This document shows positions 1-9,689 of a stretch of 9,689 bases of DNA, piece by piece. Origin of the DNA: Geosiphon pyriformis uo1. Taxonomy: Eukaryota; Fungi; Glomeromycota. A program made the position numbers and the translations under genes. Position 1 is the first letter of the stretch; every line of letters begins with the position of its first letter. The DNA is taken from contig JAAOMT010000790.1 in assembly GCA_016748015.1 (NCBI GenBank), forward strand, positions 1 to 9,689, read 5' to 3'. The notes under the pieces are model-generated. The model was not told where the DNA came from. It did not search any database and was given only the letters and a program-made list of their open reading frames with translations.

Positions 1-384
1 GTATAATTTTTGAGCTCTATTTATCCTACCTCTCATCTCGAGAAACTTTGACTACTAAGTCTTATATTCGACAAAAATATAAAAACACGATTACTTAATT
101 ATATTTCTGCGGCCTTTTTTTTTCCGGATCGCAAGGTATGCTCAAAGAAAAAATATCCTTTAAAGTTTTTCGTTTATGATAATTTTTTGGAAGCATATTT
201 AATAACTGCTTTCACCATTGGAACCTGAGGAAGCACTCTGGAGTTGTGAGTTCATCTGCGTTTTGATCCTCGGAAGTATTGCAGTTATGCAGTACGTCGT
301 ATATTGCAAGCGGGTTATACAACTAGGAGGTCATCTGCGTTTTGATCCTCTGAAATGCTGCAGTAATGCGGTACGTTGTATATC
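1..384 (+). repeat. Left arm of a perfect 384-bp inverted repeat bracketing the window
   Basis: Base-by-base comparison: 1-384 (GTATAATTTTTGAGCTC...GTACGTTGTATATC) is the exact reverse complement of 9306-9689, with no mismatch found. ORFs 218..550(+) and 9251..9472(-) share an identical N-terminus for this reason. Confidence 0.98.
252..384 (+). repeat. Tandem subrepeat in the left arm (one 79-bp unit plus a truncated 54-bp second unit)
   Basis: TCATCTGCGTTTTGATCCTC occurs at 252 and 331 (period 79), each followed by similar GAA.T..TGCAGT.ATGC.GTACGT.GTATAT. Confidence 0.92.
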
Positions 385-1424
385 AGCCACTACAGAAGAT
401 TTTGCAATCTTAAGTGTGGTCAAAAAAGAACCACTAATAGAAACTTTGACAGCAGTAATCAAAAAAGTCTTGAAAGCAAAATCCATACAGAACAACTTAA
501 CATTGTCTTTTGAAACAAACTTAAGTCCAACAAAGCCAGACAGCAAGTGAAACAAAAAATTAACTAAGGTTAATTTCATCTTGAAAATAGCATCAGCTAC
601 CAAAATGAAGGCTATTCACCCAGGAAATTTTTGACAATTGAAAATTGTTTTCCAAACACCATTAAAAATAGTACCAAAAAACAAAAAAAAAACATTGATT
701 TTGTTTCTATTTGATTAATTTAATTCTTAAAATCAGATAATTTAATAAATTGTTTTGTTTTAAGAATTAGTAATAATTTATTCAATATTTTATTTAAAAT
801 TAGAAAGAAATTTAAAGTAACAATAACAGATATAAGTAATTGTTGCTGTTTTTTAAGTTTTTGGTATTTTTGGTTATTTGTAAAATAATAATAGTAGTAT
901 TAATAATAATAAAAGCAAAAAAAACCAGTTTGTTAATTGGTTTTATAATTAATGATAATATAGTTTTTAATAAAATTTATATTATATTTTTTAGTGTATA
1001 ATAATATAATAAATTTTTAAATAAGATTATTTATGGTTTTTTTTATAAAAATAATGTGTTTTTTAAAATTACAACTAAAATTTATAATTTTAACTTTTTT
1101 AATAATTAATAAGAAGTTTACTTTAGTGTATTTTTCTATTTGTTAATATGACAATTGCAAAATTATGTGATTGGTATTTACTTGATTATTAATATATATA
1201 ATATATTCATAAATGTAAAAGTTATAATTTCAAGTTTTTTTGTATAATGCTTGTACAAATAAAAAATGATTTGTTTTTGAATATTTTATTTCTGCCACTT
1301 TGATAATTATTACTAATAGTGTCATATTATGAATATTTTTTTTTGGGTTCAATAATCTAATGGCTTTTAACATTCAGTGTTAGAAATGTGAATTTTTTTG
1401 GGAAAGTTTTATATAATACAATAT
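385..1424. other. CpG-free, very AT-rich tract; probable decayed transposon/repeat DNA (coding-like remnant at about 385-620 on the - strand)
   Basis: No CG dinucleotide found between 376 and 1424. Sequence 385-603 reads open on the - strand (FVGLKFVSKDNVKLFCMDFAFKTFLITAVKVSISGSFLTTLKIAKSSVVA), and the rest is extremely A/T-rich. TE origin is inferred. Confidence 0.5.
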
Positions 1425-1539
1425 CGTAAATCAAAGATGTGATAACAAATGTTGATTATCAGTATTTACTGATTATCTGATGGCAGTGTAGTTTCGAAAA
1501 GTTGATTGTTTATGCAAAGGAAATACTCTAACCTCTGAA

Positions 1540-2241
1540 ATGTCGCTGAAACCGTACCAACGAGAGTTCATCTCTTTTGCTATTTCCCATAATGTGATAC
1601 GTTTTGGGTCATTTGAGCTAAAATCAGGACGAATTAGTCCTTACTTTTTTAATGCCGGCTTGTTTAGCACCGGTCGCGCTTTATCCTCCCTCGGCCAATT
1701 TTATGCCGCGGCTTTGGAAGACGCAGGTGCTCCATCACTAATACCCCACCCTAGCCAGAAAAATACTGAAACTACATTAGAATATAACATGTTATTTGGT
1801 CCAGCATACAAAGGGATACCCTTAGTAGTGGCAACTGCCATTGCCTTAGTAGAAAAATATAATAAAGATATTCCATACGCCTTCAATAGAAAAGAAGTAA
1901 AAGATCATGGGGAAGGTGGTAACATTGTTGGAGCCCCTTTAACTGGTCGAGTATTAATTATTGATGATGTAATTACGGCGGGTACTGCCATCAAAGAGAG
2001 TTTCACTATAATTAAGGCTCATAATGCATCTCTTGCTGGAGTTATTGTAGCTGTAAATCGACAGGAACGCGGAACAAATGAAAAGTCGGCCATTGAAGAA
2101 ATTGAACAAGAGTTTGGAATTTCTGTGAAATCTATTATCACATTTGAACAAATTATTCAGTATATGACGGAAGAAGGTGGCTATGATGAATATTTGGAAA
2201 AAATGAGAAATTATCAGGATACCTATGGGATCAGAAAATGA
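1540..2241 (+). CDS. URA5: Orotate phosphoribosyltransferase (monofunctional, fungal Ura5/PyrE type), 233 aa
   Basis: Motifs FGSFELKSGRISPYFFNAG, LFGPAYKGIPL, FNRKEVKDHGEGG and the PRPP-binding loop VLIIDDVITAGTAI. Possible in-frame 54-nt intron at 1727-1780. Confidence 0.97.
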   Translation: MSLKPYQREFISFAISHNVIRFGSFELKSGRISPYFFNAGLFSTGRALSSLGQFYAAALEDAGAPSLIPHPSQKNTETTLEYNMLFGPAYKGIPLVVATAIALVEKYNKDIPYAFNRKEVKDHGEGGNIVGAPLTGRVLIIDDVITAGTAIKESFTIIKAHNASLAGVIVAVNRQERGTNEKSAIEEIEQEFGISVKSIITFEQIIQYMTEEGGYDEYLEKMRNYQDTYGIRK

Positions 2242-2287
2242 CCAAGAAAATCTCCGAGCCTAGACTTTATCAACTACAAATTAAAAA

Positions 2288-5065
2288 TTACATATTATTT
2301 TTGAAGACTTTCAAATTTGGGATATCATAAAATTGTTGAAGACATTCGGGATTTGCCAATGTTCCAGTAGGGATGTATTTTTCGCCTGAAATGATACGTT
2401 TCACAGCAATCTCGACCTTCTTGCCATTCACCGTGTACTTTTAATTATTAGACATAGAAAGTAGTTAAATTAACGCTTCAGATTGTTTAAAAAGGGTTGA
2501 ACAAACTTAAAAAGAATTACCGGGATGTCTTTAATCGGTAGAACAATGGCTGGGACATGTCGGGGACTCAATTGGATTCTAATTTTTTGCTTAATATAAT
2601 TGATTAAATTTTTGTCCAATACGTGTCTATTAACCATTTTTAAGAAGAGAATAACTCTTTCGTCATCTCCTATTTTCTGACCAACGACCAGACTATCTTC
2701 TATTTGAGGAAAACTTTCTACAACATTATAGATTTCTGCACTTCCAAATCGAATCCCCCCAGGATTAAGTGTGCCATCTGAGCGTCCAAGCATCACAACC
2801 CCACCTGTATTTGGATTGATCCATATGAAATCTCCATGATACCACACTGATGGATAATTATCAAAGTAGGCAGCACGATACTTGAGGTTTCCATGATCAT
2901 TCAAAAAGTATATAGGCATACAAGGAAATGGCTCACTGCATACCAGATCAGCAGGTTTACCAAATGATGGATTATCTGGAATATTTTTTGATATCTCAGA
3001 ATTTTAAAACCACAGAGGTTAACAAAAAAAATGCTTAATCTAGAGTTTACTTGGCCCGTCCCAAGCTTCAACTTTCATGCCCAAACATATGCATTGAATT
3101 TCTCCTCGATAAACTGGGAGAGCCGCATTGAGTCCGGCAAATAATGAACAAATGTCGGTACCACCTGAGTATTAACAATCAGAGACATTAAACTAAATCC
3201 GATTCAAAAAGTGATAAAAAATATCGAGAAAAATATCAAAAGAAGCTTTCGATCGAACCGGTAATAGAGCCTAATAGCACATCACTTTTAATTGATTGGT
3301 AAACAAAATCGAAACTTTCGGGCTTCAAAGGGGAAGCCGTGGACAAAATAGTGCGTATACTTCCAAGATTATGGTGCTCTTTGGGTTTGTATTTGACATC
3401 CTGAAGACTTTGAATATATTTAGCTGAAATACCAAATATAGTAATCCTAAATAGCAAATTTTTGATTAAATGTGATTGGTCAAAGGGTATACTAAGAGGA
3501 GTAGATAATAAAACTCACCCTAATTGGTCTGTTAATTCCCAAAGAGTAGAAGGACCAGGGTAGAAAGGAGATCCCTCATATAAAACTATTGTACATCCAA
3601 CGGCCAGACCAGCGATAAGCCAATTCCACATCATCCAGCCTGTTGTTGTATAGTAAAAGAACACATCTTCTGATTTCATATTCCCATGCAAAACATGTTC
3701 TTTTTTTTGTTGAATTAATACACCTCCAGCCCGATGAACAATACACTTTGGTTTGCCCGTAGTACCAGAGGAAAAAAGAATATATATAGGATGATCGAAA
3801 GGAAGTTGTTCAAATATTAGCTCTTCAGCTGGATTGGCCATTTTGATGAAATCCATCCAGGATAAAGCTATTTGAATGTCCGATACATCCACAGACTGGT
3901 TCTCCTCAAATGATATAACGATAACTTTCTCAAGACCTTCCTTGATGAGATGCTCAACAACCTGCCTAAGTTTGGGCAGATGATTATGAAATTTTCCGTT
4001 GTAGCAAACAGCATTCACGGAAAATAATATTTTTGGCTTGACTTGAGATAATCTGTCCAAAACAGCGGAAACGCCGAAATCAGTGGAAGTCCCTGCCCAC
4101 ATACAACCAATGCTACTTGCTGCCAGCATTGCGATGACAGCTTCCGAGCAATTTGAAATATAAGCGGCAATTTTATCACCTTTTTTTGCACCTGCTGCTC
4201 GCATGGCCGAGGCAGCAAGACGCACTGAATCAAAAAGTTGTGCGTAGGTGACCTTTATAGGCTGTCGCCCCTCTCCTTGAGACACAATATATCATGTATC
4301 ATATGTTTAGTTGTCAAAGAGCAAATAATGTCAAAATCTACAAAGTCTGTAATTTACCAGTTGATATTATCGCTACTTTATTGGCCTCTCGACACCAAAG
4401 TAAATTTTCGGCGAAATTTAAAGTTGCTCCTGGAAACCAACCCGGGATATTATCCATGGGCTTGGATTCCATTACCTATCAATAGCAGCGAGCTCACTTA
4501 AGGAAAATTCATATTGAGGAACTTCTGGTATGTTTGAAATGCGGGACAAAATTGTGGATAGTGGTCACAGCGTATTGTAATAGGACATCATTATGACGTC
4601 CAAGACTTATTTTTGCAGGCAGAAATTGGGTTAACGTATCAAATTGATGGATGAACAAGGTTTCTTTTTCGCAAATGAAGAATTGGTTGCCTGACAGCAA
4701 ATTTGTCCCGAATTTCAAATATGCCCTTTTGTTATGTTCTAATTCTTTTACACTTGCCCGCTCATAGGGCGCAGAGTGTACTATTTTCGTATATTGCCAA
4801 ACCGAAGCCCAGAAATCGGCAATATTATTAACTGACCATTCCCATAGTTGTTTGTAATTTTCTAAGGGCATGAAAATAGTGAGCTTTTTATAATCTTATT
4901 AGTTAGAGGTTTTGGTATAACAAATTGATCGCCACCTAAGTTTAAATTGAAGTTTGCATTTATCCCTCGTCGAAACTTGTCCATTTCGGTGTCGGCAACA
5001 TTTCGTGGCTCCCATAAACGTCCCGGAAATAGAGGTAAGGTAATTTGAGACTTCGTTGTTGACAT
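2288..5065 (-). CDS. AACS: Acetoacetyl-CoA synthetase (acetoacetate-CoA ligase, ANL superfamily), about 671 aa, 8 exons: 5065-4936, 4861-4758, 4475-4358, 4275-3519, 3446-3259, 3164-3051, 2975-2521, 2437-2288
   Basis: Manual splicing gives 2016 nt in one open frame. Motifs [91 protein letters not shown] and [13 protein letters not shown]. Six GT-AG introns of 72-94 nt and one 282-nt GC-AG intron. Confidence 0.93.
4527..4725. mobile_element. MITE-like element of about 199 bp inside AACS intron 2
   Basis: 28-bp imperfect TIRs: GGTATGTTTGAAATGCGGGACAAAATTG (4527-4554) versus the reverse complement of 4698-4725, GGCATATTTGAAATTCGGGACAAATTTG (24/28 identical). Removing the element leaves an 83-nt intron, typical for this locus. 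Confidence 0.7.
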
Positions 5066-5271
5066 TCTAATCAAAAATAAAGGAACTAGCAACTCTATCA
5101 AAACTCAGAAGGTAGGATGTTTAGAATTAACAGATTGAAGATATCATGCATGCTCAATCCTAATGAGCAAATTTGGATTTCGTTACACTTCAACATTTTT
5201 CTATAACCCACTCTTTAACTAGGTTACAATTCTTTGAAAATTATAAATCTGTAGAGTAAAATTCGTCTATA
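5066..5271. promoter_or_regulatory. Short divergent (probably bidirectional) promoter between AACS and RED
   Basis: Only 206 bp separate the two head-to-head ATGs (5065 on -, 5272 on +). Confidence 0.6.
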
Positions 5272-7257
5272 ATGTCTGCAACAGATAAAGGGTTATTCTT
5301 TGTTCCATTTTTTGTGAATTTAATTTTGTGTATATATATTTAACCTAACTAATATAGATTGAATCAAGATGATTTCCGTAAACTTTTGCAAACTCCTCGG
5401 CCTGGAGAAATTTCCTCAAAAGTTCGATTAGGCGGTCTTGGGCTTAATAGTAGGATACCTCTCCCGCTAACGCCGTAAGTGCTAAAGTGTTGAAGTTTTT
5501 TACATTTGCTTTTGATAATATTAGTAAGCCACTTTAATATAGAAAGGTCACATTTGCCAAAACTGCTGATAATCCACCACCAAAGTTCAAAAGAAGGTAG
5601 GTTCATTCTTTTGGTGTGCTTGATTTTTCTTTTCCTTCAATCTTTCACTTCATCCTGCTCTCCATCAAAGCCAGTTTAAGAAACCAGCGGAAGTCGATGA
5701 GGTCGCTTCGAATGACAACAAATATCGGGATCGTGCGGCTGAACGTAGAAAAGGTGCGAATCCAGATTACCAAGAAACCGAACAAATCTTGAAAGCTTTA
5801 AATAAAAGCGAAAGCCTAGAAGCCAAAACAATTTATGAGCAGTCAAAATATCTCGGGGGTGATACGGAGCATACGCATTTGGTCAAGGGACTCGATTTTG
5901 CTTTGTTGGCTAAAGTGCGCAATGAATTGCAACAAGAAGATCCAAGTGCCGAGGGAGATCAGGAACTCGAATTGGTGTTGGAAAGGATAAAAGAAGAATC
6001 TGAAGAAAAACCGCGGATCAACAGTAAATTTGCTCAAAACATATATGATGTAGCTGTGGTGGATGCGCAAAAAAAACCACCAGAAATAAACGACTTATTT
6101 GTTGCTGGTCGTATGGCCTACATTTTTGAGTTAGCTGACGAAGCAGGTGATTACGGTGATCCTTTCGCTATACCGACAACAGTCATTCGAAGTAAAGCAG
6201 ATGTTGGAGATGCCGGTGCAGAAGACAATTCGACAAACGATTTGGTAATCGAAAAAATATCTAGAGTAATGGCCTATGTAAGAAAAGGCGAAAGAAGTGG
6301 CGGTGTTGAAGTGCGAGAAAAAAAATTAAAGAAAAAGTTAAAAGAAAAACAAGTTGAAGAAGTTCAAATCAAGAAGATTGCTGCAATTGATGAATCAGAA
6401 GATATTTTTGCGGACGCTGGGAGGGATTATGATGCGTTTGCAAATATGGAAAATACTGAAATGCAAAAGGAAGATGAAGAGGAAGATGAACCAGTATTCA
6501 TTGGCCCAATCTTCCCGGGTGCCCTCCCTAATACAAATAAAGCTGAGTTAGAACAAAAAGTTAACTATTTTAGCGATTCTATTAAAGCTGAATATCATGA
6601 CCCGATGGATATCGATCGAAAAGAGGAGAAAGAAACTGAACTATCCCTAAATACTTTGATTGAGCAAGCCGCAGAGGGTGTTAAAGAGATGAAAGACTCG
6701 TTATTTTTAAATGAAAAAATAAATGAGACCAAGGCTTCTTCAAAAAGTGAGGAGATCCGAAAAAAACTGATGGGGCATGATAGTTATGAAGGAGATTATT
6801 CTACTTATGGTCTTAGTGTAGGTAATATTAGTGGAACGCGGGAAAGCGCATATGACTCGGGTCATTCAGATTCTGATTCTGATGGCACTGGGCTTGAACA
6901 TACCATCAGAGACCAAGGGGTTACTAAAAATAAAAAAGCCCAGCTATCGAGATGGGATTTTGATACAGAAGAAGAATGGCAAGCCTACAAGGTAAAGATT
7001 GTGGATCAAAAAATAAAATGCGTTAAGCTCTCATTAAATTCCACATTTTTTCACTTTCCAAGGATAATGTAACGGCTATGCCTAAATCTGCCTTTCAGTT
7101 TGGAGTTAAAACAGGCGACGGTCGAAAAACTCGGCGTAGCGGAAAAGAATTGACCGAGAAACAAAAAATTGATAGAGATTGGCAAAAGATTAGTCGAATA
7201 ATGGAACAAAAATATGGCGACGATGATGGGCCTTCAAAAAAAAAAAAAAAGCAATAA
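5272..7257 (+). CDS. RED/IK-family spliceosomal B-complex protein, about 568 aa, 5 exons: 5272-5291, 5358-5474, 5543-5596, 5671-6991, 7063-7257
   Basis: Manual splicing gives 1707 nt in frame. RED N-terminal motifs LNQDDFRKLLQTPR, YRDRAAERRKGANPDY, SKYLGGDTEHTHLVKGLDFALL, GRMAYIFEL and IPTTVIRSKAD. C-terminal motif RWDFDTEEEWQAYKDNVTAMPKSAFQFGVKTGDGRKTRR. GT-AG introns of 66-74 nt. Confidence 0.92.
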
Positions 7258-7604
7258 ATGGACTTGGCTTGATTTAAATTGGGTTATTCAATAAAACATC
7301 AGAAACCTTGTTATTTTTTGGTGTGGCTTAAAATTTTATTTAATCCCTTGACAATAAGCTTATACAGTAATGGATGAGAATCCACGATATGAAACCATAA
7401 AGCTGCAAAATTATGTTTATTTTACAACGTAACATTAGGTACACAACGGAAATGTTTACGCCATCATGTCGACTGCTAATTCCAACTTTCCTGGATTAGG
7501 TTAATGAAAAACAACTTACTTTTAATGTTATAGTTTTACCATTTATTATTTCAAGGAACAAGAGAGAAGAAATCAATATGTTATCAAATTTCATTAATGG
7601 ATAA

Positions 7605-8447
7605 TCAAGCTTGGGAACTCAACACTCTCTTTCGTGCGATCTGTCGGCGATTAAGACGTTGCACTTTCTTGTCATCATCTTCGCGTTTCACTTTGACCGC
7701 CTCTTCCGACACGATGATTTCAATGTGGCATGGGCTGCTCATATAAGGATTAATACGCTACAGAGAAATGGAAAGTTGATTGAGTTAAAGATGGAAAGCT
7801 AAGTTAACGGAATCCTAAGATACTAACCCCATGAGCACGATATGTTCTTCGTCGTTGTTTGGGAGCTTGATTAACTTGGATATGCGTGATGACCAACTTT
7901 TCCACTTCTAATTGTTTGAGCTTTGTATACAATAAGATTGATAAAAGTTTAAATCAATTTTCGTGCTCAAGGGAAGAATAAACTGCATCTATTTATACCT
8001 CGGCGTTACTTTGAACATTCTTTAATAAATCCAACAAGAAATCGGCACTCTTCGTTGGCCAGCGACCTGTTTCCAAAAATGAAGTTTAAGAAATACAATG
8101 TATATATTCGTAAATTTAATTCTTTTTCAGACCTTGAGTAGCACCAAAAGCCTTAGCTTGAGCGCACCGGCCTACTCCACCGTTGAAGCGTCTGAAAGGC
8201 ACAGCTTGTTTGTGGCCCTTCACATCCTCGAGATACTTAATCGCATTCAACAATTTCCTCCCAGAAATGGCTTGGGCAGTTTCTCGCGTATTTTTAAAAT
8301 GCACCCGCAAGTAGGCGCCACGAGTTTTGGCAGCTGTGATAACATTATCAGAATTGCATTCACAAGGTTCATCCGAACGCATCGAGAAACAAAATCATGA
8401 CACTTACATTTTGCAGGGTTTACCGCAACGGTCGAGTATCTTACCAT
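7605..8447 (-). CDS. RPL17: 60S ribosomal protein L17 (uL22), 184 aa, 5 coding exons: 8447-8408, 8333-8133, 8066-7999, 7920-7828, 7757-7605
   Basis: Spliced 555 nt: MVRYS...[23 protein letters not shown]...[17 protein letters not shown]...GRWPTKSA...[32 protein letters not shown] introns of 66-78 nt. A possible extra 5'-UTR intron acceptor (CTAAC...TTTGACAG) lies just upstream of the ATG. Confidence 0.96.
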
Positions 8448-9177
8448 TTTTTTTTTCAGGATAGAGGTTCCTGTCAAAGTGCTAAACTTTGTTAGACCAA
8501 CAGAGAAATCAATGAACCTAAAGGATTGGCATATCACAATTAAAAAATAAGTGTTTTTATGAACGTTGTGAGACAAGCGTAGTCAAAATGTTTTTGGTCG
8601 CCAGGATATAATCGAGTATAATGCTTTAGAATTGGTACGGAAATGGATGCATGGACTAAAGAACAATCAATCGATATCTCTGAAGGGTATTTCTAAGATG
8701 TCCGAAACCTGATCCAAAATGGCAGGATTCTTGTAAAAGTAATGGGCTATCCAAGCACCAAAAATCCTAAAGTCTGAAACTAAGGACAAACAATATTTTG
8801 GAGTTGAAAACTCATCTCACCTTCGGGGGGAAGTAAATTATAGAGTGTAGCTTACTTTCAAAAACTTTCAAATAAATATTTTTTATGATCAGGTAATCGG
8901 GGTAATCTGATAATGGTAAATTTGTATCAGATAAAGGAATTATGACTCATATTTTGCTGTAAAAAAATTATTTTTGTTGATTTATTTAATAATAAATTAA
9001 AAATCTCTGGTTATTAAAACTGTTTGATGTTAATTATTTAAAATTAACTAAATAATTTTACAATTAAAAAAAATTGTTTATATAAAATTAATTTCAATTA
9101 ATTTTAATCAGATGCTTTAAATGTGGGGATGTGGAATATTCTTATCACGTTTTCGAGTGTGAAACAAATAGCGTGCT

Positions 9178-9270
9178 GGGTGACATAAACTCGATGAATG
9201 CCAGTTAGGGAAAGTTCTGGCCGAGGGTACCTTCGACTACGTGTGTTTGGCTAAAGACTTGATTTCGCAG
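9178..9270 (+). pseudogene. Degenerate Ser/Thr protein kinase subdomain I fragment
   Basis: Reads G*HKLDECQLGKVLAEGTFDYVCLAKDLISQ, resembling Y-x-LGKVLGEGTFGxVxLAKD with both outer glycines of GxGxxG mutated and an upstream stop. No downstream VAIK, HRD or DFG motifs are seen. Confidence 0.45.
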
Positions 9271-9438
9271 ATGAACCTCCATGGTCGTATAACCCGCTTG
9301 TGGGCGATATACAACGTACCGCATTACTGCAGCATTTCAGAGGATCAAAACGCAGATGACCTCCTAGTTGTATAACCCGCTTGCAATATACGACGTACTG
9401 CATAACTGCAATACTTCCGAGGATCAAAACGCAGATGA
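9266..9438 (+). repeat. Tandem subrepeat at the right end (85-bp and 79-bp units plus the start of a third)
   Basis: CGCAGATGA occurs at 9266, 9351 and 9430. The units share GTATAACCCGCTTG and GAGGATCAAAA and differ by 6 nt of indels plus scattered substitutions. The array extends about 40 bp inward of the inverted-repeat boundary. Confidence 0.92.
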
Positions 9439-9689
9439 ACTCACAACTCCAGAGTGCTTCCTCAGGTTCCAATGGTGAAAGCAGTTATTAAATATGCTTC
9501 CAAAAAATTATCATAAACGAAAAACTTTAAAGGATATTTTTTCTTTGAGCATACCTTGCGATCCGGAAAAAAAAAGGCCGCAGAAATATAATTAAGTAAT
9601 CGTGTTTTTATATTTTTGTCGAATATAAGACTTAGTAGTCAAAGTTTCTCGAGATGAGAGGTAGGATAAATAGAGCTCAAAAATTATAC
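9306..9689 (-). repeat. Right arm of the perfect 384-bp inverted repeat
   Basis: GATATACAACGTACC...GAGCTCAAAAATTATAC is the reverse complement of 1-384. Identity stops at 9305/385. Confidence 0.98.

Follow-up and report, generated by a model that had tools for sequence, protein, structure and literature searches.

A four-gene block between inverted repeats in Geosiphon pyriformis is probably the spacer of a recent inverted segmental duplication

In human inverted duplications, the two copies are separated by single-copy spacers of 766-70,466 bp (PMC3907307), and insertions of templated and of inverted sequence have been documented at breaks in yeast (PMC11724301). We analyzed a 9,689-nt stretch of the genome of the fungus Geosiphon pyriformis (hereafter the window). 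It corresponds to C566:1-9689, the first contig of scaffold C566, and runs from the first base of the scaffold to the edge of a gap of 3,789 N. Four genes, URA5, AACS, RED and RPL17, are enclosed there by inverted repeats. The initial annotation of the window, made from the sequence alone, had offered three readings: (a) a non-autonomous element with terminal inverted repeats (TIRs) or a linear mini-replicon, (b) an invertible chromosomal segment, or (c) the unique spacer of a larger inverted duplication. We favor the last of them. Most likely, the locus is a recent inverted segmental duplication, formed by template-switch or fold-back repair, and the four genes are its 8.9-kb single-copy spacer. 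As in the described duplications (PMC3907307, PMC11724301), inverted copies flank a spacer of normal copy number and of a length within the reported range. One junction looks native and the other novel, and templated pieces of distant loci lie nearby. Unlike in those cases, the arm seems to be short (about 4.8 kb by our estimate) and interstitial, a terminal deletion is not known, and clean microhomology is not evident. The structure is of a known kind.

Two other systems are similar in part. Like Pack-MULE and Pack-TIR elements (PMC8277862, PMC5861414), the arms consist of intron-retaining fragments of two unlinked genes and produce a spliced chimeric transcript. However, these fragments lie within the arms and not between TIRs, and no TIR family is present. 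Moreover, the genes between the arms are complete and without donor copies; donors exist for the arm fragments only. In the flip/flop loci of the yeasts Ogataea, Komagataella and Ascoidea, MAT genes change places between a site that is expressed and one that is repressed (PMC6692504). Like these loci, the one in Geosiphon has a multi-gene block between inverted repeats of kilobase size with gene fragments in them, but it has no MAT genes and no known silencing site.

The window ends lie within a longer repeat

Direct comparison of the two arms bore out the exact inverted repeat of 384 bp at the window ends. Bases 1-384 are the exact reverse complement of bases 9306-9689, which is far beyond chance, and the identity is 99.5% when the comparison is extended to 390. 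The description of this repeat as terminal did not hold. Base 1 is the scaffold start, base 9689 adjoins the gap, and a contig of raw reads passes beyond base 1. The left arm (1-384, plus strand) is the innermost 384 bp of a low-copy repeat, the remainder of which is cut off by the scaffold start. The right arm (9274-9689, minus strand) is colinear over 416 bp with a third copy of the repeat and is truncated by the gap.

The third copy is located 70 kb away, at C566:80007-80421, is 96% identical, and extends outward without a boundary. This is the only place where the outward extension of the arms was assembled. In the left arm, bases 1-133 (plus strand) are a fragment of a PCH2/TRIP13 gene, comprising the end of an intron and one exon and extending outward, with 96% identity to C411:301601-301707. 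The donor gene on C411 was identified as PCH2/TRIP13 by PDB and by the Pfam family TRIP13_N. Bases 134-233 (minus strand) are a fragment of a PH-FYVE gene with Pfam support, 94% identical to its donor at C787:1181852-1181951. The third copy contains a whole 516-bp PCH2 piece with its introns kept, nested in a 339-bp PH-FYVE piece; no bases were lost or duplicated at the nesting junctions. The 79-bp units follow. The arms contain internal tandem subunits: the innermost part of both arms is made of diverged 79-bp units. In the left arm the array spans 248-384 (plus strand, 1.7 copies), and each of the three repeat copies stops at a different point of the array. In genome-wide searches, the 79-bp unit was found in three copies only, all of them on C566, and the arm matched the three C566 copies and the two donor genes on C411 and C787, and nothing else. 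The arm is therefore not a member of a family with other cargo, as might have been expected of a transposable element. It is the inner part of a mosaic of host gene fragments and is not TIR-like.

The mosaic is also transcribed and spliced. A GT..AG intron at 136-229 (plus strand) is removed from a chimeric transcript of the repeat, joining PCH2-derived to repeat sequence. The joint, from 133/134 to 228, is present in the sequencing runs X2 and X3, and the intron ends were checked.

The read evidence consisted of Logan contigs from four runs, of which X1 behaves as DNA, whereas X2 and X3 contain spliced introns and behave as RNA. X2 is labelled "DNA?" and X3 "probably DNA", yet spliced introns occur in both. 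In AACS, X3 has three differing sites, and it may come from another isolate. A 414-bp contig of X1 covers 1-96 and extends 318 bp outside base 1, which makes the repeat at least 702 bp long. It ends on two diagnostic single-nucleotide differences, at -319 (third copy versus native PCH2) and at +97 (arm versus third copy). Therefore, beyond base 1 the DNA continues as PCH2-derived sequence. Base 1 itself is inside a PCH2/TRIP13-derived intron, which runs on in the third copy and in the donor gene on C411.

The apparent transposon ends are assembly breaks within a longer repeat. Repeat-induced contig breaks occur in short-read assemblies. An assembly artefact at inverted repeats has also been discussed for the yeast loci (PMC6692504). 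In the window, both contig tips halt within a collapsed repeat, at one and the same base, and have an identical consensus. Because the tips coincide at the same base of a two-copy repeat, they mimic TIRs. In contrast to a pure assembly effect, the underlying inverted repeat is backed by junctions in the raw reads. The window structure is thus real but ordinary, and it was misread because the window coincided with a contig. An ordinary block between repeat copies at contig ends, the outcome that the initial annotation had named as contrary to its proposal, is largely what we found; the chimeric junctions named along with it were not.

Inner junctions and extent of the duplication

Both inner junctions are real and not chimeric. 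The left arm breaks off within its second 79-bp unit, where the middle of an old AT-rich high-copy repeat (385-975) follows; this rearrangement junction cuts the old repeat exactly at 385. Among 961 candidates, at least 40 copies are about 78% identical to this old repeat, and other copies have more than 1.3 kb further upstream. The missing upstream half was not found in the first 105 kb of C566. An X1 contig (355-690) contains the left junction, which is also present in X2, where RNA contigs span it (355-671). On the other side, the right arm is colinear with the third copy down to 9274. The interior is represented by one 8,341-bp X1 contig (984-9324), and its end at 9324 is exactly the branch point predicted for the right arm and the third copy. 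The left-junction contig and the end of the interior contig together establish the two junctions. As the left arm cuts the old repeat and the right arm stays colinear with the third copy, we infer that the left copy is the derived one.

Contig depth, which is a rough guide and not a copy number, agrees with a single-copy interior between arms of higher copy number. The interior (79.8), the left junction (79.2) and the third copy (76.3) all have single-copy depth, and two arm contigs are deeper (224 and 275), but one arm contig is lower, at 102. The depth of 275 belongs to the 414-bp contig and is 3.4 times that of the interior; 3.2 would be expected if both arms extend outward and 2.2 if only one does.

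Symmetry indeed continues outward, over 318 bp in the read contig, and a second pair of sequences fits this. The 660 bp past the gap (C566:13479-14138) are identical to C554:324803-325462. We searched for the first 24 bases preceded by one additional base, allowing one mismatch. The C566 copy was recovered, with an N as the mismatch, and the C554 copy was not. Thus, C554 appears to have no base beyond 325462. In the simplest graph with a two-copy repeat, the repeat unit would add up to about 4,833 bp, made of the arm, the 3.8 kb hidden in the gap and the 660 bp. It would have four unique flanks: one at either end of the gene block, C554, and what remains of C566. C554 would be the left neighbor of the window. 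The 660-bp twin ends 140 bp ahead of the start codon of the neighboring host gene. This gene, after C566:14138, may encode a peroxisomal ABC-D transporter, an identity not confirmed by Pfam.

The single-copy depth of the spacer and the outward symmetry are among the observations that favor a unique spacer within a larger inverted duplication. Its history may be reconstructed as follows. A mosaic of host gene fragments arose by copying at the DNA level, which kept the introns, and it is now present in three copies on C566. A break in the old repeat at 385 would then have been repaired onto the right-hand copy 8.9 kb away, and template switching or fold-back would have copied the right-hand copy and its outer flank in inverted orientation. 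The duplicated unit would be about 4.8 kb, with C554 as the neighbor on the left. Finally, the short-read assembler probably stalled at the two-copy repeat and left both tips at the same base. No function is needed for such a structure, and the genes would be passengers. A second inverted duplication lies beside the third copy, at C566:77509-79222. It is a near-perfect palindrome with arms of about 870 bp and a spacer of 135 bp, and it seems to fit local repair of the template-switch or fold-back type. It may be partly an assembly effect. This palindrome is built from a fragment of a multi-copy gene family and has a small gap in one arm.

Several points weigh against an inverted duplication of this form. 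The repeat length of 4.8 kb is a matter of parsimony and not a measurement, as 3.8 kb lies in the gap. An arm-specific contig (67-215) has 1.3 times the single-copy depth, compared with the twofold depth expected. The two arms may therefore differ at a few sites merged by the assembler, and their perfect identity may be partly one of consensus. The contig depths are rough in any case, and X1 may be the source data of the assembly itself. Between the left junction and URA5, the assembly runs through short contigs within the high-copy repeat (662-1013). After base 384, the inverted match has four of six bases in register, with no clean microhomology.

Alternative explanations

Among the alternatives, the one that survives best is that the gene block occurs in both orientations among nuclei or isolates through recombination between the inverted repeats, passive or regulated. 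We consider it unlikely. The repeats are near-identical and inverted, at least 702 bp and probably about 4.8 kb long, and 8.9 kb apart, and the scaffolder connected one side of the block only. The flip/flop loci of yeasts have inverted repeats of about 2 kb (PMC6692504). Nevertheless, the cargo is four housekeeping genes without MAT genes, no centromere or telomere was identified, and the repeat is young and made of gene debris. Moreover, about 4.8 kb of identical flank would lie on either side after flipping, so the promoters would be unchanged. A more specific form, in which the 8.9-kb block of four core genes between inverted repeats of about 4.8 kb is an invertible flip-flop segment unrelated to mating type, with both orientations among the nuclei of the coenocyte, has an equally low probability in our view. 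Structurally, the block could invert, as long inverted repeats that are nearly identical can recombine with each other, but nothing suggests that such inversion is programmed.

Partial misassembly is somewhat less probable again. In this case the junction between the arm and the old repeat would be real but located elsewhere. Its connection to the URA5 side, made through the AT-rich repeat, would be false, and the genes would have no inverted repeats around them. The link from 690 to 984 does consist of short contigs in a high-copy repeat, and contig tips of the assembly hold collapsed identical repeats. However, overlapping contigs (355-690, 662-756, 732-1013 and 984-9324) match the window without differences and at about single-copy depth. 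This copy of the old repeat is about 22% diverged from its relatives, and the link to C554 closes the graph consistently.

It is very improbable that the four genes are carried by a giant non-autonomous TIR element of about 18.6 kb with arms of 4.8 kb, the true ends of which would be C566:14138 and C554:324803. The captured gene fragments with retained introns and the chimeric transcript are similar to Pack-TIR elements (PMC8277862), and URA5 is not at the site it has in Ambispora. Against this, there is no TIR family genome-wide, no donor copy of the genes and no transposase within the window, and the outer 660 bp reach to 140 bp before the start of the neighboring host gene. The move of URA5 need not be recent, whereas the arms are young.

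True termini at 1 and 9689, either of a linear mini-replicon or of a Mutator/Foldback-type element with 384-bp TIRs, are refuted: despite the exact complementarity over 384 bp and the internal tandem units, the 414-bp read contig crosses base 1, the PCH2-derived intron at base 1 continues in the third copy and in the donor, the interior has chromosomal single-copy depth, and, unlike in linear plasmids and invertrons, no open reading frame (ORF) for a protein-primed polymerase was found in the window. The element or replicon proposed as reading (a) is not supported, as its ends are breaks in a longer repeat, its arms derive from host genes, its unit has three copies and its genes have no donors.

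The enclosed genes and their significance

All four genes of the block are present, with Pfam matches, and are single copy, because positions 1400-8900 have one match in the genome. Second copies, which had been proposed as a check, were not found. URA5 (orotate phosphoribosyltransferase; 1540-2241, plus strand) is one ORF of 233 amino acids, and therefore it is intronless, unlike the intron-containing gene first described. Its closest relatives are those of Glomeromycotina. The AACS-like acetoacetyl-CoA synthetase gene (2300-5065, minus strand, stop approximate) has several exons and matches the Pfam families AMP-binding and ACAS_N. Four of its introns are found in RNA contigs, with continuous phases. 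The gene for the RED/IK splicing factor (5272-7257, plus strand) encodes 568 amino acids, and its protein is identical to the annotated G9A89_005452. RPL17 (uL22; 7605-8447, minus strand) is multi-exon, with its exon pieces read individually, and matches Ribosomal_L22. The spliced models of AACS and RPL17 were inspected exon by exon. A minus-strand intron is spliced at 2132-2222, inside the URA5 coding region, so the 3′ untranslated region of AACS reaches at least 110 bases into URA5 in antisense.

The outer genes, URA5 on the plus strand and RPL17 on the minus strand, face inward as described. A mobility gene is likewise absent: no such ORF was found in the window, where the longest stop-free frames outside the genes have 114 and 77 amino acids. 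Of the AT-rich buffers reported inside the arms, the left one (385 to about 975) is mostly the truncated old high-copy repeat. An ORF of 110 amino acids over the left junction was rejected as a gene; it has no Pfam match and crosses an intron and the repeat. A degenerate fragment was recognized by translation at 9110-9260 (plus strand), and a related piece is located on the outer side of the third copy (79% to C566:79339-79396). Its translation seems to resemble the C-terminal zinc-finger region of ORF2 of non-LTR retrotransposons. No transposase was found by Pfam among the ORFs near the third copy. The broken frames of a multi-copy family at C566:73600-75430 have no Pfam match but may be transposase-like.

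We compared the neighbors of URA5 in six Glomeromycotina species and those of RED at five loci, and never found any of the other three genes. The neighbors of the two genes differ between nearly all genera, and those of URA5 differ in every genus seen. The comparison with relatives that had been suggested is uninformative because of this variation; synteny speaks neither for nor against a native block. No RED locus was found in Ambispora, and thus the closest comparison is missing. The order in Ambispora is ATG14, NF-YB, URA5 and Pil1, and G. pyriformis has the same order without URA5 at C710:900314-903499, with about 400 bp from NF-YB to Pil1. Judging by gene order, URA5 has moved in one of the lineages.

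The locus illustrates how an inverted duplication that is collapsed at the tips of contigs can mimic a TIR element, and otherwise it matters little. For the Geosiphon assembly, it suggests a join of C554 to the start of C566. Structural variation within one organism is a debated topic in Glomeromycotina. If both orientations of the block were found among nuclei, the locus would provide a simple marker for such variation.

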